Below, in pieces: positions 2,279 through 60,799 of a stretch of 64,000 nucleotides of DNA (positions are counted from its first letter, which is position 1; the number at the start of each line of letters is the position of its first letter). The stretch comes from Podarcis melisellensis (taxonomy: Eukaryota), in the NCBI GenBank assembly GCA_964234715.1, contig OZ174275.1. One strand, given 5' to 3'. Under the pieces are notes generated by a model, which had not been told where the DNA came from, made no database searches, and saw nothing but the letters and a program-made list of their open reading frames with translations. Both the position numbers and the translations under genes were made by a program.

Positions 2279-2877
2279 GGGGAAAAAATCTATGCTGGTG
2301 TGTGTGTGTGTGTGTAAGAAAGCCACCTTCCAAAATATGAAGTACACTCAAATTTTATTTTGGGAAATAAATAAATGCTTTCATGGAAATGTTAATCATG
2401 TCAGCCTTAGCAATTTGTAACAGCTTTTAACTTGTGTCCTGTGGCCAAAGAAACCCATACACTCATGAAAACCAGTTCCTAATGTGTGTGGCAGTGGTGG
2501 GGGCTGCAGCTGCTGGGCTGCAGCTGCTGCAGGTCTGGCCTTCCATTAGGCAGTGACAATTGTCTCAGGTGCCGGAGAAATGCCTCCACCAGCAGACTAG
2601 CTGTGGTGTGTGGCTCTCCTGTGTACTTGCCCCACCCACTTGCCTCATTCTGGGGGAAATGGTTCTTCCTCAGAGTGAGGCATTGTGCTTTAGGTGGCCT
2701 AAGAAGATGCTTGCCTTACCACTACATCTCCCCTGTGGCTAGCAGCAGCAGCAGCAACAACAACAACAAGCACTCACACTTTACATTGTGGGTGCCCTTT
2801 GCAAGATTGTGCATGGTGCTACAGTTTCCACAGAACTTACTGGCAATCAGGGACTGGTCTGCCTCTCAGTGTTAATT

Positions 2878-3614
2878 TTTGGAGGTTCACGCCCAACTTC
2901 AGTAGTCAAGTTTCATTGCTGGGAGGTGGGGCCAGTCCCATATATATAAGGCGGTGGAGCTGACAGTATCCAGGCGGTCAGCTTAGGAGATTCACCCTCC
3001 TTACGCTCCCTTAGTTTAATGTTTTCTTGTTTGCAGGATAACTTTTTCTTCCTTTTTAGCGGGAGCAGCTACGGTCTATGACTGGTTGCTGTTGAAGGAC
3101 CGGGAATAAATTTTTCCTGCATTGGCAGGTTTTGTCTTCCATAGCAATTCGTCACAACTTTAGTGGTTTATGGCCTTGGGTGGAATCCTTTAGTCTTTTC
3201 TTCCCTATAATGGGGGGTGGGGGTGACTCACCCCCCTGTGATGGCGATTCCAGGGTCTCCTCTTAAAAGGGGTTATATAATGGGTGTCACTGGCCATACA
3301 CTGAAAGGTTGTCAGTGAACTACCCTGCGTGTGGGGATATGGGCTTGGCTGCCTGCTACACTTATGTCTCGCAGAGCACCCCCATATCCCATTTACCCTG
3401 ATGAGCCCCAGTTCCCCCCAGCTGGGGGGCTGGGAGGGATACATGCCCAAGGCCTAAGCTAAGGTCTTCCTATATTCGGAAGTTTAATAAAGTTGTGGCC
3501 TAATTTTAATTCCATATAACCTTGTCAGAGTCTTTATTCTTTCCTTATGATCCCTGGGGGCTAGGGCTGTCACTGCCTGGTCACGCAACAACAACAGCAA
3601 CAACAGCAACAACA
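2878..3614 (+). mobile_element. Unclassified ORF-less, highly self-complementary element (LTR-like or DIRS/Ngaro-like terminal repeat, or non-autonomous retroelement) with CAA/CAG tail
   Basis: GC-richer block flanked by GTTAATT direct repeats (2871-2877 / 3615-3621); TATATATAA near 2941-2949; AATAAA 3486-3491; ends GGTCACG followed by (CAA/CAG)n; several nested inverted repeats. Confidence 0.55.
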
Positions 3615-6600
3615 GTTAATTGAACAAAACTAAAAAGCTCAAAGTAACTTCAAACTTTTAACTAAATTTAAAAGAGAATGTCCAGCTACTGTGGAAGAAC
3701 AGTCCAAAAGCTCTTTTTAACCACTTTTCCCAGAATGCCTTGCTCTGAGAAACGACCCCCCCTTCCTCACAGCACAAAGAGGGGTGGATAAAGTGTCACC
3801 ACCACATTAGTAGTGACAAAACATATTAAAAGTAATTAGGGAAAAGGAGGGGCAGCAAGAAGGAGGAGGGGACAGCAGTAGCCAAGCTGCTAGCCTTGAG
3901 CCTCTCGCGCTGTGGCAATTGTTTCTCATGACCCAGCCCCTAGTGTCATGATTAAACTACATTTGTACTTTAAAACATGAATTTAGTAAGTTGGGAACCT
4001 AACAAGCTGACACACTAGGACCAACCTGGATATTTGGCATCCTAGTATGTTACAGTTTATTAGAGGTATATATGCTTATGATATAACCATACATCATGAT
4101 TTTAAAAACCTCTTTATTCTATACTATCCTTTTATTTTTAAAGATTAAGTAAGCTGTATTTCTAACCCAAGTGGATTAAGAAACCCTTATTCAGCCTTGA
4201 AACCACATCAAGATGGCCAGGGCAGAACAGCTACATTTGTGTGTGTGAATGGGCTTTGCTTACAGTGGGCTAAGAAGGTGTGGCCTTGCAAATGACCACA
4301 CAGGCAATCTGGACTTTTGCTACTTTACTATGTTACAAACTTTGGACCTACCCAAAGAGAGCATGTTCCCATGCATGTGGAAAGGACAATATTGAGAGAA
4401 AGGTCGATTTTGGTTATGCTACTTTTGCAATCTAGTGGCGTTCTAGATCCTGTTCAATAGGACAGTGCTTCATCCTATGTATATACAAAGGGCGTTTTTA
4501 TATCAGTGCAAATTGGGGAAAGCCAATTTGGGCAGAGAAGGTCTAGTGGAACTGAGAAGACCAATTGGGAAAAGAATTACGATTCACAAAAAGGATACAA
4601 TTCAGAGAAGTCTTAATTCAGGAAAAATCCAAGGAGACACATATCAGCAGCATTCATCTTTCCCCTGTTTCTCCTTGTTACAGGATCCTTAGCCCAGGTC
4701 CTTGGTATGTGTGTGAGAGAGTATATGCCATCCTTTCTATGAAAGGATTAGGGTTAGTGTGTTAAGCAGAGTTATTCCTTCAATCTATCCACCCATTCCT
4801 AGGGCTCTGCTCTTCAGGAGGAGGAGAAAAGTCCTGACTGTGTAATACCGATTTTTAAGAAACAAAGTTTGAACTTTACTTTTTGGTCTGATTGTTTATC
4901 CTGGTATCCATTTGCAAAGAAAGATCCATGTGCTGTGTGTTTGGGGCCCAATCAACCTTGGCATACACAGCAAGGCTGTCGTTTAAAGTTCACAATCCGG
5001 TTCCTCCCCAGTCTGGGTCAACAGCACTCAAGAAGCCTTTCAGGCAGCTTGAGGGGTTGGAGTGGGAAGCAGAGGGCAGGAACGCCATAGTGTGCACATG
5101 GAACATCTCATCCCAGTCCTTTCCTCTCTGTTTACAACAATCCAAAACATATTTTGTCTAAATTAACCAGCTGCAGTTTAGGTCTTCAGTGCTTACTGTG
5201 TGGCCTTGTTGTAACACGCTGACTCAAAGAACAACACACACATTTTCTCTAAGATGTGCCACCAGATGATTACTGCTATTTTGAAGAAGCTGTTTCAAGT
5301 TTCTGTGTTGGTTATTCTTTCCTTCCTTCTTTCTTTTATGTTGCAGCATATCAGTGGTTGGAATACAGTTTCTTAAAATAGGGCACTTCGCCACGGGAGA
5401 AAGTTCAGAATATTGTAACACCGCAATCTGTCTGAAAGTAGTTGGTACGGAATGGCATGGACAACACTAAGACAAATGGCAGGGAATTTGAACAGATTGT
5501 GGCAGTGTGGCAAAGTGTCTTGCAAGGTCTGGCAATGGATATCTACCACATGAGCATACCTGCCAACTGTCCCATTTTGAGTAGGACACCCAAGAATTGC
5601 AGGAGCCATTCTGGCTTCTAATTGAATCCCAGGATGTTCCGTTTGGGCTCCCGTGAGAGCAGGTTGACTGAATGGGGGACTGAATTTTTGAAGGTATGCC
5701 TGAAATTCAAAGTTTGGGAAGCTGAAGTTTAAAAGGATTGAGTGGCAAGCAGAGGTAAAATCCCAATGTTGATGTTCTGTTGTGCCACACTAAATTGTTA
5801 ACCGAAGTGCTATGGAAGTCCACACTGGACAGAAATGTGTGAATGGATGCAGAATTCAAATTGAGCCTGCATAATCCAATATTCTTAGATTGTGTCCACT
5901 CAATTGCTGCAGGGTGCCGATTAAACATTTTGGTGTATAATTTTGATTATAGATGCCTTTGGTATGTACACCTGAACATCCCTGTGCAAAGGTTGTAATC
6001 ACCATGTGTAGGTCAAAGATAGTGTTAGTAGATATGGAGTGAGCTGCAAGGGGAAATGAGAGATGGCAAAACTGCCTTTGGCAGAAGAAACTGAATGTTG
6101 TAAACCCTTCAAAACTCTTTGAAAATGGTTGTTCCCCTGACGTGTTTCCCGATTTCAAGTTTGTGTTTCGCCTCCCCTCTTCATTCAAGGCAAAAGTGCT
6201 ATGTGCAGAACTTTGGATTCATTCTTGGGATTTATCCTGAATCTGTCAATTTTGCTTTCTCCCAGTTTCTCATTTCCCCTAGTCTATATTGCCATAATTT
6301 CACAGCAGTTTGTGATTATTATTATCTTTTAAGTCTTCATGATCATCTCCTCTACATATTAGTCTGAATTTCTCCCAATATGCAAATCTTTGTACGCAAT
6401 TTTGCATAATATACACATTTTTGTAGAGCAGTTTTGCCCAATACAATGCTTTTTTGCATGTTGCTTTCACTAATATATGCAATTTTATGCACAGTTTACC
6501 ACAGAATGTGTATTTTTGTACGTGCAACTTAACTAGAGAATGTTACAGATAGGCAGCCGTGTTGGTCTGCCATAGTCAAAACAAAAAAAATTCCTTCCAG

Positions 6601-17245: not shown

Positions 17246-17722
17246 ATGATGGCCACTGGTTCCATCACCTCCTGGCAAATAGAAGGGGAAGAAATGGAGG
17301 CAGTGAGAGGTTTTACTTTCTTGGGCTCCATGATCACTGCAGATGGTGACAGCAGTCATGAAATTAAAAGACGCCTGCTCCTTGGGAGAAAAGCGATGAC
17401 AAATCTAGCCAGCATCTTAAAAAGCAGAGACATCACTTTGCCGACAAAGGTCTGTATAGTTAAAGCTATGGTTTTCCCAGTAGTGATGTATGGAAGTGAG
17501 AGCTGGACCATAAAGAAGGCTGATCGCCGAAGAATTGATGCTTTTGAATTATGGTGCTGGAGGAGACTCTTGAGAGTCCCATGGACTGCAAGAAGATCAA
17601 ACCTATCCATTCTGAAGGAAGCTGCGGGAGGCAGTGGAAGATAGGAGTGCCAGGTGTGCTCTGGTCCATGGGATCATGAAGAGTCAGACACTACTAAACG
17701 ACTAAACAACAACAACAACAAC
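17246..17722 (+). mobile_element. Bov-B LINE 3' fragment with ~194-bp internal deletion
   Basis: ORF MATGSITSWQIEGEEMEAV..FTFLGS..EIKRRLLLGRKAM..YGSESWTIKK..; at 17620/17621 it jumps from CTGAAGGAA to GCTGCGGGAGG relative to the other two copies; (CAA)n tail. Confidence 0.95.
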
Positions 17723-17737
17723 CATCCATTAGCAGAC

Positions 17738-26471: not shown

Positions 26472-27293
26472 TTGCCCTGAAACATTTTCCATCCGTATCT
26501 GCTGCATTGACAAGGGTGCTATTTAGAAAGTCCAGGAAGGGGGTCATTGTCCTTTTCCCAACATGTGTTTCAGGCCCCATATGATTCTTTCTCAGACATA
26601 CTCATATTCAGAGCTGGCCCACCCTTGGGATGAGGTGAAGCAGCTGCCTCAGGTAGCGGAAGTCAAAGAGGTGGCTCTCCCATAGGCACACACAAACACC
26701 CCGCCAGCAGCAGAAAAGTGGCACTACCAACAGTTCTGGTTTCTACCAAGATCTCACCTATTTGGCTTCCCAGTTAAGGGCAACAGTGCAGAGGCAAGGC
26801 AGAACACCACGGCTCCACGTGCTCCTAGCACACTGTTTTCTAATTTATCCAGCACGTAAACCTTGCCTTCACAAATATGGAGGCAGAGAGCCAGTGTGGT
26901 GTAGTTGCTGTTTACCTGCAACCAGGTCTCCTGGTTGCAGGGCTCAGATTCAGCTAAATCACAAATAACCCCAGATTTCGGGGGCATGATTTGACATGGC
27001 TCTCCCATCAATCTCAGAATGAGAATTCTGGTCTGCATTTGTGCAGAGGTATGTGGCTGCCAAAGCATATATGGACCCTTTAAGGATTTCAGACAGCTCT
27101 CTGGGGGGGGGGGGTTGTCTAGGGCTTGTCACATTTGTGGGGATGAGACCTTGCCAGATTTCTTAAACCTTCAAATGACTCTGGTTCTCTGCTGAGATGT
27201 CTTCCCAAGTTCATTTTTCATGGTTCACTGGGAGTTGGCCAGGGTCCTGATCTGTAGTGCCATGCCTGGAGCTGAGCTGACTTGAACTGAGCT

Positions 27294-29675: not shown

Positions 29676-30689
29676 TGGTCTCATATTTTCTCTGTGTTAT
29701 GTTGGATGCATTTTTAACTTCATTTCAAAATAAAATTCCATGATATAGGAATGGGGGGTGGGGTGGAATTAAAGGCAAATGCGTCATTGCTTTTATCACC
29801 TCTCTGCCACTATGGACCTTTTTCATCCAGGATTTCCAAGCTACTTTCTCCTTAATTGTAGTTCTTGTCAACTACCATTAGATGTGAGCAACATAAAGAC
29901 TTAAAGACATACCCTCTGGATAAAACAACAACCAAAAAGAATACGAAGCAAAAGAAGTTCACAGTTTTTCAGTGTGGACAGAATTAATCACACTTAATAA
30001 TTATGCAAAGTGATAACACTTATTATAAGATCATATAAACACGGTTAAATGAACAGTGGCAGTAACCTTTAAGAAGGAAAACAAAATTTGCCCACCCAAA
30101 ATGATGCAGAGCTAAGTGTTTCATTGGCAAGGCATTCTGAGGTGTGACAGCTTTCGAACCACTTCATCAAATTAATATTTCAACATGTCTGTTTTCTTTA
30201 TTTTCTTCAGCCTACCAGCCTACTGCACAACTTGTGGGAATAAAGCCCCCTGATTTCTGAGTGTCAACAACTGCTTTGTGTGCCATAAAAGGCACAAATG
30301 TTAATAACAACAACAACAATAACAGCAACAACAACAATAATGATTCTAGAATGGTGCTCTTCATAGAAAGAATTTGTACTGCTTTGCAGGACAAGAAATG
30401 GCTCTGCACCTAGAGCAAGCAATAGAAAAAGGATGGGGACCTTCAACAAGTTGCCCCCCAAGTCCAGCTTATCCTCTCTTGTCTCAGTTCCATGTTGTTG
30501 TTTTTCCTGTCCACACCTGCACTGATGGTGCTTCCATTTCCTTCCTTCCTGCATAGTCAGATTTTTTTTTAAAAAAATTATTATTATTTGCTGCAAGAGA
30601 AAAGTCAGAAGCAGCAGTGGAAAAACTTGGATTTTACAGTGGTGACCACATTACGATGAACCGCTTCCTAACTTAAATTTATTAGAACA

Positions 30690-41369: not shown

Positions 41370-41840
41370 TGTGGAGCCCTGAAAAACAGAGACAGAGAAT
41401 GAATGGAATGAAATTATGGGCTTCCTTTGTTAGGCGGAGATTGCTGTTTGTATGTGGGCGGAAATGGCATTGGGCAGGATCAACATAAATGGAGGGTATA
41501 AGGGGCCTGAAGGGAGGATTGACCATGACACCCCCAAGCTTGACATATCTGCCTGGTAGGAATCTGCACCCTGGTCCTGCAGTGAGACCTTGCTTGCTTG
41601 GCTTGCACCACGGGAAGGTGCAACACTGGCTGACTCTCACAGAACAGGTTTGGAGGGGGGTCCAAACCCGGCAGATCCATGCCATCAACATGGGGCTTGT
41701 GGAATGATGAACTGATCCTTGGACCCAATGCCATGCCAACCCTTTCCCTGCCTACTGCTGTCAATAAAGATTTGGCCTGCTTTCCCCCCCCCCCATCGGC
41801 ATTGTACCGTCTTGTTATTTTGCTGCTCCGATAGGTCACA
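41370..41840 (+). mobile_element. Unclassified ORF-less, highly self-complementary LTR-like element
   Basis: TATAA 41497-41501; AATAAAGATTTGGCC from 41763; ends GGTCACA; at least six nested inverted repeats; 5' boundary uncertain; no TSD found. Confidence 0.5.
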
Positions 41841-45637: not shown

Positions 45638-48600
45638 TGTTTTCCAAAGGACCAAATGCACTAGGGCTGTATTCTTCTTTTCATATATCCATGCAACATC
45701 ACAAATAGAGACGCACAATTAGAGAAGCACTTCCATCATCCCTGGCTAGCAGGCCCAGTGGTCAGGAATGGTGGGACACAAGGTTGAGAAACACTGGATC
45801 AAATCATTAAACAGTGGTTTAATGTCCTGGTTTGTAAATAAACTCTGTTGAACAACCCATAGCTTCTCATCTTGAATTGTAACAAGAAGCCAACTACTTG
45901 CAACTCATGAACAAAAGACAATGGGAGGAGCATCAGAAGTGGACTATTTACATTTAATTTATATTAATGGGCTTCTGAAGCTAAACCTTTCTTCTCCTCC
46001 CTTTTCTTCCTTTTTTGGCTGATATGAATTTCCTTCTATGGTAAAGTGAGGGGAATGTAAACTGCCTTTTGTATGCACATTACCTTTTGCCTGCATGCAG
46101 ACTGGATTTTCTGGATCGTCGTCTAAATTGTAGGTTTGATGGAGAAAAGCCACTCAAGAAATACACATACAAAATCTCCAATAATTCCAATGTTAGTGCA
46201 AGATTTGAATAAAGTATGATTAGCACATTATTTGGGCTGCAATGTGCATAGGGGGGAGATAGATATTGCAGAGGAAGTAGCCATCTCTAGAGCCAGCCCT
46301 AAAAACAATTCATTAATTGGATGCTACAATTAAGCTTAAATAAATGTTTTAAATACTATTTTATAGGGTGAATCTGAAAAGTCTACTGAGTGTGGGTTAG
46401 ATTGAAAACCCTCTTTCTGATCCTTGTCGGTGTGGCCCATGGAAATGCATGAATGCAGGTAGTCAATGAAGTAGCTTTCCCCCATGAGCTTGTCTCAGGT
46501 GCCCTTGGGGAGAGAAGTATGAATTCATTACCAAATCTGAGCTTCATCACATTCATCTGCTGTTACTTGGGTCCCGCCACCAAGACAGCCAAGTGATTCA
46601 AGCCTTTTAACTAGAGACATATAGAATTCCAAAGCCACAGTTGCTATTGCAAAGCAAGCTAATCAAGATCTCCTGTAACCTTATTTCTATTCTGTCAAGG
46701 AGAATGCCTCACTTTACCATTATAAACTTACAACAAAAATGTGACAATTTAACATAAAGTGATTTTTTTTTATCTTGTAGTGTATATCTTAATAAAGTAT
46801 TATGCACCCAGAGTCTGACTGAGACAGATTCTGATTACCTGTCCGTGTAGAAACAGACTGCTTTCGAAAATTATTTGGAGTCCTCTGCTATTGTACCTGT
46901 CAGATTCTTTTAATTAAAAATGTATTGATGCATGACTAAATTGCACGCAGTGAAAAACAGGTCCATTTTAGTTCTACAGCCATAATAAACATGTAACCCA
47001 ATGAAGGGAGACCATACAGTTACAATGGGAAAGGCATGGCAGGGAGTGAAAGTGTACTTTTCCAGGTCAACCATATGCAAAGTGTGATGGACCCAGTTGA
47101 AGCAAATCAATGTGGTCTCCATGGGTGCAAATTAATGCATTAATTTACACTGAATAGTTTTTAATGAAGTTGTTTGACTGATGTCAACAACAACAACAAC
47201 AAAAGGGTAGGGAAAACATCAAAAGGGAGAGCAAAAGAGGGTCAGATTTGTATAATATTTGCATACGCCATAAAATATTTGCACATGTCATAAAAGAATC
47301 CTGGGAAATGTTACATAATTTGCCAAATACATTGGCTTCTTGAAACACCACGATTAGCTATTCACAGGAAGAGCATCCATATTCCATCTCTGGAACATGG
47401 AAAATATATAATGTTATCCATCTTGCCATTTTCCCTCTCAATGTTCTAAGATGTTAGTAATGCTCAAACATATTTTGCAGCAACGCATTTGCCTGCTATT
47501 CATGATAGGTGATGCTTACACTTGACTAGCAGAAATGGAGCAGCAACTGTCAAGATGTCAGTGTTAAAATTAATATTAAAATCATATTGTATGTGTGTGT
47601 ATTCCTCACCCCACTCAATTCTATATATTTAAATATATAATGCACTAACCAAACGCTGGTGTGTGGAATGGATGTGCAAATAGCCTAAAAATAAATGACT
47701 GGCTTTTGATTTCAGTGTTAAGCTAAGCACATAAGCCAAAAAGCCATTAAAGTACATTATATCTTCGTTCAAAAATGTAAGGTCATAGAACCATCTCTTT
47801 GAGCATGTCACTTATAATAACTCATTACTTTCTGGAGCTTACTGCATGGAGCTATCGCTAAACAAATCAAGCAAATATATGTGGGTCATTCTCTGAGCAA
47901 AAGACAAATGTGACCTAAAAAGTGACACTCTTGAATTTATTTATTTTTTTTACCCTAAAGATATTCTGCTGGTCCCCAAGGACAGGAGGTTTCAGGTAGG
48001 CAAAACCAGTATCTTTTGTCTGTTGGTCCAAATAAAATAATGATTATTCTTTGTATTTCCTGTGCACATAAAATGAAAAGTCAATCCAATTATGCTCTGC
48101 AGAAGCTGATTTCACACTAAGATTGCAAAGTCCCATGTATGTTCAAGTTGGATCTTTCTACAAAAAGATGAAATACTTTCACCTTATCTTACTCTTTGTT
48201 TATTTGGCTTCCTAGGTTGCAGGAAAACTTTTTGTGTAGCTATAACAGTGTACCAGGCCGTCTAATAGTTTTTGAGTACATATAATCTCCTTATCTTGTA
48301 TCCTCCCATTAGCCAAGGCCCTTGTGACTTTGTCATGCGGGAAATGGCAACTGGGAAACGTCACTGCCCCCTACAGGCTAGTTGTGTCATTTATGCAGCT
48401 CTCCAATGATAATTTGCACTTTCTAATGAACTTGGACGTTTTCCAACTTTGATTTGGTGACGAGCCAGGGGAGACCTGATTTGATACCACATTTGGCTTG
48501 GGAGCCAAATCTCTTTTCATTTAGTTGGGATGCCAAATTTCATTTGGTGCCAAGCTTGATTTGTTTTCACAGATATTGTTGCCTTGTCACACTGATTGAC

Positions 48601-55387: not shown

Positions 55388-56444
55388 TATTTAAGAGCGA
55401 AGGATGCATAATTCACTATGGAAGAGCTGTCAGATTTGAGAATACCTTTAAATTATCAAAACTTAGCAACGCTAGTCAGTTATAATTATAATGGAAATGT
55501 AGTTTTCTGTCAATGTTATCACAGCAAACATCTCTCAAGGAACAATTTCCTGTGTTAAAATATTTTGTCAAAGTGACTTTTGATTCCAAAGGGATACAGA
55601 TTATCTAGTTTTATACCTGCATATTTCCCTCACAAATTAAATATAACAGCTTACACTGAACAAAGCGGTAAGTACAAAAACATTAATAAAATCCCCTTTG
55701 GAAACCAGATTGTTACCTTGAAAGAATGGGTTGTCATCAGCTCCCCAGGACAGATAAAGCGATGCAGAAAAATATATTGTTTCTGTTATACAACATGACA
55801 AGACAGCTTTCCATCAGACTTCCAATTACATGATAGAAACAAATGTTCAGGCATGAGAAGAGCTCTTTGCTGGAGGTGAGCACACTGTACAGGAAAGCAA
55901 CTTATGGCCTCCATTTATCAGCTTCTTTTGGGCTACAAATGGGAGAATTTAGTTCGATCTGCATCTTAAAAGTGAAGCGACCTAAGTTGCTCTTTCTAGA
56001 CTATTACAGAGATTGGAACACAGTGAATTTCCTTCTACCCTAAAACTGTGCAATTCAGTTCTTAGCTGAAAGGAAAATTACCCAGATGCATAAAAATGTA
56101 TATTTTTTGGAATGAAATATATTTAGAAATGGATGCATCAAGGCAAAATATTAAATGAATATCTATTTAAATTATTTGGCTAGATGGTATTTAATATATA
56201 TATATTGCGGGTTAATGTGAAAATTGGATGGAATGGATTTATTTATTCTTTATTTATTTGTTTTATATACCACTTTCCTCCATAGATCTCAGGGCAGTTC
56301 TGAATGAACACATATGAAATTGAGTCAGATTGGAAATAGGCTGGCCTGTCCATCCCTTGCTAAAAGTGCCTAAGAAGGATGTACTGCTTCTCTCTCAAGA
56401 TACCCATATGGAGGGCACTATGTTAACTTCTTCCATGTGGGAAA

Positions 56445-56525
56445 AGTATCATAGTTCAGTGGTAGAGCATCTGCATAGCATGCAGAAGATCTCAGGTTCC
56501 AAACTTGGCAACTCTGGTTAAGAGG
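56445..56525 (+). mobile_element. tRNA-derived SINE head (not a functional tRNA)
   Basis: CATAGTTCAGTGGTAGAGCATCTGCATAGCATGCAGAAGATCTCAGGTTCCAA: A box, anticodon-like arm and degenerate B box; no acceptor stem. Confidence 0.6.
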
Positions 56526-58230
56526 ACCAGGGGTGCTTCTAGATGACCTGCTTATTGTGCATCCGCCCTGTTTTGTTTGCAGGAGATTAGAAGAAATTGC
56601 CTGTTTAGGGAGCGTGCCTTCTGATTTGCTTGTGAGACAGTGAGATGACATTGCATCAAAGCACATGTCATCACACACGCACACCCTCCACCCATTCCTT
56701 AATGCAAAAAGTCTGATCTTTGGGAAATGGGCTTGTTGTACAAGACCTCCCAACCTTCTGTAATTGTGCAACCTGAATTTGCTGGCATGTGGCTGAATCC
56801 AACCCCAAAATAGCAGCAGGCTAGAAGTGCCCATGGTAACAGATAATGGGAACGCCCATTGCTTTGGAAAGTATGTCACACTGGGCTAAATAGTTTGACC
56901 TGATACAAAGCAGTTTCCTATATTCAGAGTTGGCTGCAGCAGCAAGAGAGGAAAGGGGCAGGAACAGGAATGGAAAGACAGATGGCTAAATCAACCCACA
57001 TGAATATTCCACGGCAGTCACAGGCTCATAGCATGGATGACGAATGCATACCGAGTCCTCTTTTCCTTTCTGTATCCTCTTTCTTTGCTCATAGTCACTT
57101 CCCTAAACCTACTAGATTATTAGCAAACAGACAAGCAACAGATCCATATCAGAAAACATCAATTTCTGGTTTCTGTGGCTGCTGCCTCTACTGCACGATG
57201 TAGCATTGCATAACATAATACAAATTAAGTAGCTAAATTGGTTTCATATCATCTGATTTTCTGGCAGGCTTTACAGTGTTAAGTATTTACTAAAAAGGCA
57301 ATTGGGATGCACAGAGCATACTGAATTATAATTTATTAACACATCGACAGTAGTTGCACATATTATCTTCCACGACCTCACCTGTGATTTTTTTTCTGGG
57401 TTAAATCCAGTCCTTTCCCAGTAGTGCATCAAGTTCTGGAATAGACAGAAGCTGCTTTGCTAGGCAAACGTCCAGGCTAATGATTTTACCTTTATTCTCC
57501 CCTCTCCTTCAGTTAATGCACCAACATAATTGCTCAAATGGAGTTTTAAAATTAAGGCTATAAATAAAAAAATTGGGTTTTGCAGGGCATCACACGATGG
57601 ACTTCTAATGAGTCAACAAAAACGGCAAGTTTCTCCTCTCTCAAACTCCACATGTAGGCAATTTACTAATAATGAATAATAAATATATTTTAATAGTTGC
57701 TGTGCTTCTTGTGTCACATATTTGATTTATAGCCAGCAAGGGAGTCCTTTTTCTCAGGTCACCAGTTGCTTTGGGGAGGCAGGGGGCAAGAGGTACCAAT
57801 GAGGAGCCACCACAAAGAAAAATGTCGGAAATGTAACTGAATAGTTTTTTCCCCTGAATAAGCAATTTCTTCTTCTAATATTGTCTATTTCAAAGATGAA
57901 CTAGTAGCAATAAACAGTTTTTGCAATATCTAGTATATTTTCAATTGCATAATTGCAATTACCAATGCTAAGTCTAAAGCAATGTTTATAAAAACCACAT
58001 CTCTGAAATGCTCCTGTTTTACAGTTTAGAGCAGCAGGATCCAAAGACAGAAGTTAAAAAAAAAATACTCTTCATTTCTGCCTTGTGCATTCCTTTAACA
58101 ATGTGTGGTATCAACATATTGTAGTGATGATCCCATTGCTTCTAAGCTTCATTAACTTATGTAGGAGAGTTATGCACACTGTCAAATCAGGTGAAATCAG
58201 GAGGCTCAGTTGTTCTTCATGTTACTTCTA

Positions 58231-58358: not shown

Positions 58359-60799
58359 CTTAGGGCTTCACCTGTCAGTCTTCTCACATATGCATCACAA
58401 CATTCAATATCAGTTAGGCAACATCAGTGGGTTGTATCTAACAAATTACCCCATTAGCATAAGGACTTTGGCTTGTACAACAAGACTGGCTCTCCTTGCT
58501 TCCTTCCCAAAACTGCTCCAGAGGGTTTGAGGAAAACCCAGAGAGCTGGGTATGGGTACATGGGTAGGGAGGAGATGGAGAGGAAGTCTCATTGTACAGG
58601 TGGAAGTCCTTGTGCTAGTGAGACAACTTGGGGTGTTGTCTCCTCCCAGTAATTAAGTACATGTAAGTATAACCGGATGAAGAATCAGAAGGGGGAAGGA
58701 TCATTTGTTGCCACTGAAAAAGATCAAAGCAATTTGAATGTTTCCCTTTATGACAAAAAGAGTTATGATAAGATTAGTGAAATGTCTCTGGGGAGCTTTG
58801 TACATCCCTAAAATTGTACCCCAAAGTGAAATTTGTGCATTGTTCCTTAGGTGAATTTTGAGGGTCGCTAAATATTTTGCATAAAACGAGGAAGATTTGT
58901 CATGAGGACACCACATACCTTTCAGATAGAGATACATGGACAATCCTAACAACAAACCAGCTGGCTGTGGTCCTAAACAATTTTCAGTAAAAATATATAC
59001 CACAGAAATCAGTGGAAATTCATTCCATGTACATGTATGTATATTTGGGAAGACCAGCTTATGTACCGATATACCTACTTTAACTTCCACAATGCAAAGA
59101 TTACCTCAAAGTGCTCAGAAAACTTTGACTGCATACAAAGCAGAATTATCTGGCTCTGGCTCACCAGCTATAAAAATGTCATTTTCTTCCCATAGTAAGC
59201 ATGTGGTACTACTGCTGCAACAGTAACTTTGGCACAGCCAAATAGTGCTGGTAAGAGTGACCAATGTCCCAACAATGCAAATGACGCAGCAACGTGGCTG
59301 GGGTCACAGCAGATGTCCACACACTGACATTTAGACTTGTTTTGTGGTCCTTGCAGTAGCTACAAAACACAGCTTGATCACAGCATCAGGCAATTGGTTT
59401 AAAAACAACTAAAATGAGAAACTCTGGCATATATTTCAGTGGTGGTTTGCTGACCTTGTCAATTCTGCATTTCCCCCTGGTAACAGTGACAAGGTAGGGA
59501 ACAAAGGTTGCCAAGCTGTGTATATTGCAGTTCTATTCTGGGGTGGGTGTAGATCATGGAATTGAAATTTGCATAGCTGGATATATGACTGCAGCCATTC
59601 TAATAGTTATTACTGCTTAAACATGAGGTGTCTGAATCAACTCCATTAGTGTATTTCTGAATTGGGCATCTAGGATAGCTGTATTTTCTTTTCTCCACAC
59701 CCCGTCTCATTTCAAAGTGTATTTATAATACAGCCTAAAAGTTTCTCAGGCCTGTTTCTTCGTCTAACACTCTAAAATTCGATTAATGGAGACATTCTAG
59801 CACTTACGTCAAGTTATGTTGCACATAAATGGGGATAAAAGGATTACTAGGCTATAAATCAATTGATATATTCGGAGGATATAAATCTCAAGGACATGGG
59901 GTTTCAATGTTAATGGAAATGCAGGATTTCATTGGCTAATCACAATTTAAATTCTATGCCACTACATCACTGAAGTTTTGAGGTTTTCCTCATAAAATAC
60001 AGTTATGCTAACGAATAAAAAGCCATATATTACATACATATTGTCCCATGTATATTAGTCCCATTATTATAACTGAGGCTAATCTGGTGTAATTGCTAGT
60101 ACTCCAGTTTAACTGCTGTCTGAGTGTGTTTATATCAGTATAATAAACTAGTAGGTCTGCAAGATTTAATCAATTATTTGCCACAATCAATCAACTATAT
60201 CTTTAATCAGAGCCTATACATTGAGCTTCAGCTAATTGGTGGACTGGCAAGAAAGGAAAGACTAGAACAGTTGTAGAAGTCAACGTGATGCTTTAAAAAT
60301 GTTTTTGGACTCCAGTTCTCATTAGCTCTCATCTGCATGGGATGATGGGAGCTGTAGTCCACCATGGAAGTCACCATGTTGGCTATCCATGTTTTAGGAT
60401 GAGGGTATGTAAGAAGATTGCTCCCCTGAAAGTCCCATAAAAGCACTGGTTACAGCTTCCTGACCAGAATAATAAATTCCAGAACATAATTTGCCTTTGA
60501 GGGTGAGGTGATGGCATTTTACCTTACAATGGGAAAGACTCTAAAAATCAAAAGTGGACCATAAAATGGCCTGGCATTGCCCAGACTACCATTGGATGCT
60601 CAAACTTATAGGGGAGAAATAGTGTGATGGAGTAAGGTGACAAGCAGGAGACAGGAGAAGTTCAGAGACAGACCCATGAGGGCAGGAATAGCTTACAAGG
60701 AAGAGGTAACATACAGAGCAAAGAAAACAGAGAGATAGCTAGATAGCCAGATAGATGGACAGTAGAAGCACTAAGGGGACAGAAAAAGGAGAGTAACAG

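Follow-up and report, generated by a model that had tools for sequence, protein, structure and literature searches.

A strongly folded non-coding stretch with a (CAA)n-type tail in Podarcis melisellensis, tentatively read as an RNA copied by RTE/Bov-B-type LINE machinery

A non-coding stretch of the 64-kb window, the whole piece of Podarcis melisellensis DNA that was analysed, contains a predicted 349-nt RNA domain that exceeds every other tiled window of its length in stability and lies upstream of a perfectly periodic (CAA)n-type tail. Our preferred reading, held tentatively and at a little under an even chance, is that the stretch derives from a + strand RNA copied by RTE/Bov-B-type LINE machinery, either an unclassified non-autonomous retroposon or the 3' UTR of a 5'-truncated LINE. 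The element as delimited by an initial annotation, whose quoted strings were all found at their positions, has the following features.

2878-3585, + strand: body as delimited by the initial annotation, without an ORF and with several runs of at least four T
2941-2949, + strand: TATA-like box TATATATAA, called from sequence and preceded by a G-rich box (2920-2933)
3079-3085 with 3577-3583: complementary pair TGACTGG / CTGGTCA, 7 bp with 2 G-U
3103-3110 with 3533-3540: complementary pair GGAATAAA / TTTATTCT
3105-3110, + strand: first AATAAA, called from sequence, with a U/GU-rich stretch (3128-3140) downstream
3151-3499, + strand: core structured domain (predicted), 349 nt, closed and multibranched, z -6.33, top window of the 64 kb
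3153-3162 with 3488-3497: complementary pair CACAACTTTA / TAAAGTTGTG
3172-3180 with 3446-3454: complementary pair GGCCTTGGG / CCCAAGGCC
3299-3317, 3334-3390 and 3407-3434: three local hairpins, positions as in the initial annotation
3486-3491, + strand: second AATAAA, its last four bases inside the predicted closing helix of the core
3586-3614, + strand: 3' microsatellite tail (CAACAACAG)3, Tandem Repeats Finder period 9, 3.0 copies, 100% matches

In the predicted fold, the core is closed by an interrupted stem of about 35 bp (3151-3190 / 3435-3499). Enclosed by it are a G-rich hairpin (3212-3236), a subdomain of three hairpins (3251-3400) and the 3407-3434 hairpin, and a side hairpin stands at 3466-3482. 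Its folding energy is -159.2 kcal/mol, and none of 100 dinucleotide shuffles was equally stable, while the background of 38 genomic 350-nt windows from the same 64 kb had a mean z of -0.35 (sd 1.3) and a minimum of -3.3. Among 608 tiled 349-nt windows covering the 64 kb, the core ranked first in stability on raw energy and again after GC regression, where its residual was -5.1 sd and that of the runner-up -4.2 sd. Because local 150-nt windows within the core are unremarkable (z -0.2 to -1.8), the excess needs the four long-range closing helices, namely 3151-3162/3488-3499, 3164-3170/3455-3461, 3172-3181/3445-3454 and 3185-3190/3435-3440. Pair probabilities of the core helices and inner hairpins were 0.93-1.0 in the contexts 2878-3615, 2972-3584 and 2650-3850, and that of the stem 3407-3434 was 0.70. 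In a separate run, z was -6.5 on the + strand versus -4.8 on the - strand, and the core fold holds 15 G-U pairs on the + strand versus 2 on the - strand, which agrees with the stronger + strand z and is partly explained by the G+T richness of that strand. The excess of RNA-type structure over dinucleotide shuffles that had been proposed is therefore present and somewhat stronger on the + strand, and the core, as modelled, is a real and unusual fold. It may serve RNA stability, reverse-transcriptase recognition or poly(A) site control.

The runner-up in the same scan (-4.2 sd) is at 58442-58630, where 54-nt inverted arms, 74% complementary, stand 81 nt apart. The third most over-stable window (-3.5 sd), at 26850-27200, carries a perfect 12-bp palindromic hairpin at 26915-26941.

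The initial annotation had described the 3' part of the element as a nested rod of about 500 nt that buries its own poly(A) signal. The 505 nt from 3079 to 3583 have a folding energy of -195.5 kcal/mol (z -3.85 on the + strand, -2.56 on the - strand), the whole of the excess being located in the core. When the core was held fixed and the outer arms alone were shuffled, z was +0.8 for 3079-3583, -1.2 for 2972-3584 and -0.9 for 2878-3584; the outer helices are thus at chance level, since arms-only shuffles match them. The outermost pair, 3079-3085/3577-3583, had a probability of 0.0, and 3102-3110/3533-3541 one of 0.2-0.6. The 500-nt rod is accordingly not upheld: nested architecture persists as the closed multibranch domain of the 349-nt core, but the rod shape and its outer helices do not, indicating that much of a rod traced by eye can be chance and that the core alone survives the arms-only shuffle. 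A reading of the two arms as a decayed long inverted repeat or duplication was rejected as well (z 1.5).

The buried poly(A) signal is borne out in part. Four of the six nucleotides of AATAAA 3486-3491 lie in the predicted closing helix, but the burial is partial and depends on context: the helix over the signal has a probability of 0.98 in long contexts and 0.28 when the RNA ends at 3513. In that shorter context (2972-3513), the value of 0.28 applies to 3151-3162/3488-3499, and 3164-3170/3455-3461 has 0.63. A CA at 3512-3513 and a U-rich stretch (3521-3545) follow the signal; position 3513 is a plausible cleavage site, and burial of the signal is thus a context-dependent prediction. Within the element, structure is weakest in the 85 nt immediately preceding the tail (3500-3584).

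The putative TATA-like box may act in Pol II transcription, as may the AATAAA signals, or these motifs may have arisen by chance. A start site predicted from the box would be near 2972; further TATA-like strings at 3206-3211 and 3274-3281 mean that the motif is not unique here. As the initial annotation had stated, the element has no ORF, the longest on either strand being at most 81 aa, and protein word searches returned no match for the 81-aa ORF from inside 2878-3584 or for the flank ORF 2486-2872.

The body terminates in GGTCACG, directly before the tail of 29 nt (about 10 units). The limits of the putative inserted unit are less sharp on the 5' side, where the following features are relevant together with the candidate flanking duplication.

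2440-2742, + strand: upstream part of the GC-rich block, 52-57% GC, T>A skew, hairpin-dense
2661-2712 with 3708-3757, no strand assigned: flanking inverted repeat, about 71% identity over 52 nt
2743-2769, + strand: microsatellite (CAG)4(CAA)5, internal or upstream, in the same orientation as the 3' tail
2770-2877, + strand: stretch between the upstream microsatellite and 2878, supplying the 5' strand of the hairpin 2850-2939
2850-2939, + strand: hairpin (predicted), 22-bp stem (11+11 bp), ending just before the TATA-like box and crossing 2878
2871-2877, no strand assigned: GTTAATT, candidate 5' target-site duplication copy, exact 7/7 match
3615-3621, no strand assigned: GTTAATT, candidate 3' target-site duplication copy, directly adjoining the tail

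The flanking GTTAATT repeats reported initially are present and exact, but their status as a target-site duplication is doubtful. Random 7-mers of the window recur 300-1000 nt upstream at 6.9% of places, and more often with a variable offset; 7-8-mer repeats were likewise found at arbitrary distances from control tails in the window, and GTTAAT is present also at 2391-2396. Because of this chance recurrence of about 7%, the 7-bp repeat is weak evidence and not significant alone.

The 5' end at 2878 proposed in the initial annotation is also doubtful, as the hairpin 2850-2939 straddles it. This hairpin has -41.3 kcal/mol (z -4.52; 0 of 200 shuffles equally stable) on the + strand and only -28.4 kcal/mol on the minus strand, windows as stable occur at only about 5-6 loci per strand in 64 kb, and the fold of 2848-2941 has 9 G-U pairs. 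With 2770-2877 added, the arms-only test was significant (z -2.9, 0 of 40 shuffles), and this stretch probably belongs to the unit. The 5' end is probably to be sought upstream of 2878, at about 2770, immediately behind (CAG)4(CAA)5, or even near 2440. With about five such tracts per 64 kb per strand, one within 850 nt is expected by chance at p ~0.07.

Composition sets off a block from about 2440 to about 3590, with 48-57% GC and T over A in surroundings of about 39% GC, and the shift is abrupt right at the tail. On the + strand, the 94-nt windows with the highest stability in the 64 kb cluster at 2449-2629 and reach -47 kcal/mol. Segment 2440-2742 showed no similarity to the 3' part of the block; it may represent an older tailed unit in its own right or else the 5' portion of a single composite unit. 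On the evidence of a single copy, it is equally good to suppose that a unit 2770-3585 landed within the (CAA)n tail of an older unit (about 2440-2742) or immediately behind that tail, since priming on a (CAA)n target would place a microsatellite on both sides of the insert. The two CAG/CAA tracts were also considered as polyQ-coding and this was rejected: they share a frame, but a stop stands directly before 2743 and many lie between them. The flanking inverted repeat scored 18 locally versus a shuffle maximum of 15, its left arm being a small palindrome (2641-2682), and its arms are probably two old opposite-orientation copies of another repeat, outside the element. The GC-rich block upstream of the element also contains a tandem GGGCTGCAGCTGCT x2 at 2501-2529, and a run of N at 2099-2278 ends about 160 nt before the block.

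In the preferred reading, a + strand RNA would have been inserted as a non-coding DNA copy via target-primed reverse transcription by RTE/Bov-B-type LINE machinery; both the strand and the mechanism are inferred. The source would either belong to an unclassified family of non-autonomous retroposons or be the long structured 3' UTR of a 5'-truncated LINE, and the RNA's 3' end would be the (CAACAACAG)3 tail. Reptile Bov-B LINEs end in (CAA)2-6 (PMC13295347), and most target-site duplications of the RTE clade measure 7-15 bp (PMC6007223). The tail is of the reptile Bov-B type, is perfectly periodic and adjoins the 7/7 direct repeat, whose 7 bp fall within the RTE range, at its lower bound. Moreover, ORFs, terminal repeats, TG..CA ends and a second copy in the window are all absent, the core is the top window (z -6.3) with the + strand folding better than the -, and the block differs in composition from its flanks, as expected of an inserted sequence.

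Other observations stand against the LINE reading. In reptile Bov-B, the duplication begins with A and follows a Tn-TA target (PMC13295347), whereas the candidate duplication here starts with G, no T-run lies about 10 nt upstream and the Tn-TA signature is absent. The 7-bp repeat is near chance, and the proposed 5' end is spanned by a significant hairpin. Typical Bov-B tails are shorter than the roughly 10 units here, T is abundant on the + strand, and with one copy seen in 64 kb mobility as a family is unproven. The Bov-B 3' end is not shared, whereas known RTE-dependent SINEs do share it.

This last point could be followed within the window. At 17600-17721 there is what we take to be a Bov-B-like 3' terminus (...GGTCCATGGG...ACGACTAAA) followed by (CAA)5, the tail occupying 17707-17721; the ORF upstream of it (17246-17644) has no Pfam domain. 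In an alignment of the element with this 3' end (17520-17735), similarity was confined to the (CAA)n tail, and no 3' motif was shared with the other (CAA)n-tailed sequences in the window. The suggestion of mobilisation by a LINE is thus supported by a tail of Bov-B type and a non-coding body, but not by a shared Bov-B 3' end. A minus-strand element with a short A tail is less likely: the tail would comprise just three A's, AATAAA is lacking close to that end, and the fold is weaker.

Two more sequences with (CAA)n-type tails were noted, at 30220-30340 and 47100-47202, neither of which resembles the element; the former has a hairpin TGTGCC...GGCACA just before its TAA/CAA tail, as in stem-loop-plus-repeat LINE 3' ends.

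Searches for copies and known families were negative throughout the window. No second copy of the element was found in the 64 kb at word size 7, Rfam gave no match at the gathering score in 64 kb and only noise at E up to 10, and ten long ORFs scanned at other places in the window, between 9 kb and 57 kb, had no Pfam domain. No tRNA-, 7SL- or 5S-derived head was detected by ARAGORN or Rfam; the body has a lone B-box-like string (2884-2894), and its runs of at least four T would stop Pol III. Elsewhere, ARAGORN reported an unusually long, 96-nt tRNA-Ala(AGC)-like sequence at 56444-56539, which may be a SINE head or a pseudogene. A hammerhead core comprises CUGAUGA, helix II, GAAA and a cleavage triplet. 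Although the string CTGATGAG occurs at 3399-3406, the 3407-3434 helix is not followed by GAAA and no ribozyme family was found at E up to 10; a hammerhead, retrozyme or Penelope pseudo-LTR was accordingly rejected.

Some of the same observations would fit a resident host sequence that is not mobile, that is, a GC-rich, hairpin-rich non-coding segment such as part of an lncRNA or a regulatory region, with two CAR microsatellites by chance. We regard this as somewhat unlikely, and as the first alternative to be weighed. It would account for the single copy in the window, the near-chance direct repeat, the hairpin across the supposed boundary and a GC-rich block wider than the delimited element, and strong folds do occur elsewhere in the window (-4.2 sd at 58451, -3.5 sd at 26851). 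It explains less readily why a perfectly periodic tail adjoins an exact 7-bp repeat, why composition shifts abruptly at the tail, and why (CAA)n is the tail type of this genome's Bov-B (PMC13295347).

A solo LTR of an ERV or LTR retrotransposon, with a TATA box in U3 and a structured R-U5 carrying AATAAA, is an improbable alternative. The putative TATA-like box, the two AATAAA with U-rich downstream stretches, the length of about 700 bp and the strongly structured segment are in keeping with an LTR, and such units are common in this genome, a putative one lying at 41370-41840. The termini are the main obstacle: TG..CA ends are absent, as the initial annotation had observed, the ends set by the direct repeat being TTTGG...AACA(G), and alternative TG/CA choices leave no flanking duplication. 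Moreover, at 7 bp the repeat exceeds the 4-6 bp typical of LTR integrases, a 29-nt microsatellite tail lies between body and repeat, no PBS-like or polypurine sequence stands alongside, and the 64 kb hold no partner LTR. Similarity to the putative LTR at 41370-41840 is at chance, with 9% of shuffles scoring as high, the best local match being 21 nt around AATAAAG..TGGCCT.

It is very unlikely that the core 3151-3499 alone is a small nested DNA element of fold-back or MITE-like type, bounded by imperfect terminal inverted repeats some 40 bp long, its structure residing at the DNA level. The two sides of its closing stem do amount to inverted arms about 40 nt long that are roughly 80% identical (3151-3190 / 3435-3499), and both strands fold far better than shuffles (z -6.5 and -4.8), but no flanking duplication of 3151-3499 was found for any common superfamily, and a large share of the stability is owed to internal hairpins and to the 15 G-U pairs exclusive to the + strand. 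The terminal repeat of a DIRS/Ngaro tyrosine-recombinase retroelement, offered as an alternative in the initial annotation, is hardly credible, as only the absence of TG..CA ends and of an ORF speaks for it, whereas the 64 kb hold no second terminal or internal complementary copy, a limited check of ten long ORFs found no recombinase or RT domain, and such elements are without the microsatellite tail present here.

The preferred LINE reading invites comparison with known systems. Like the RTE/Bov-B-dependent squamate retroposons (Bov-B LINE, Sauria SINE) and the ruminant Bov-A2/Bov-tA, the element has a (CAA)n-type tail, a short repeat in the RTE range and a non-coding body. It differs from Bov-B-dependent retroposons in having no shared 3'-terminal sequence and no tRNA or Pol III head, and its body has at least twice the length of Bov-B-dependent SINEs; Sauria SINEs end in (ACCTTT)n, in contrast to the (CAA)n-type tail here. 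Unlike Bov-B itself, its candidate duplication is without the A start and the Tn-TA signature (PMC13295347).

Pol II retroposons mobilised by LINEs (hominid SVA and non-L1 LINE retrocopies) are likewise ORF-less, several hundred bases long, equipped with a LINE-type tail and too rich in T-runs for Pol III. SVA, however, is assembled from known modules and carries a poly(A) tail, whereas the element has no recognisable module and its family is unproven. With the R/U5 region of retroviral LTRs (the HIV-1 poly(A) hairpin and the HTLV-1/BLV Rex-responsive stem), the element has in common an AAUAAA predicted to lie partly in a stable helix downstream of a TATA-like box, but LTR termini, the duplication length and a partner LTR are missing. 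The comparison is an analogy; retroviral R regions fold around their poly(A) signal. In the 3' UTR of stringent-type LINEs, such as eel UnaL2 with its 3' stem-loop and repeat tail, structured RNA is also found near a repeat tail, but the strong domain of the element ends about 86 nt upstream of the tail, and 3500-3584 is its least structured part.

There is a slim prospect that the stretch represents a new lizard family of Pol II-transcribed, ORF-less retroposons with their own TATA and poly(A) signals, in which a conserved 349-nt domain would gate the AAUAAA and Bov-B would copy the RNA via the (CAA)n tail alone. Such a family, if true, would be a reptile counterpart of SVA-type hitch-hikers and would imply relaxed template choice by an RTE-clade LINE. 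If the element is single copy, it would be merely structured intergenic or intronic DNA, of little interest. If copies in the genome confirm a tailed family, it would be a non-SINE passenger of an RTE-clade LINE without that LINE's 3' end. It would then offer a large and well-defined RNA domain for covariation testing and would bear on the template strictness of Bov-B, an open point in PMC13295347.
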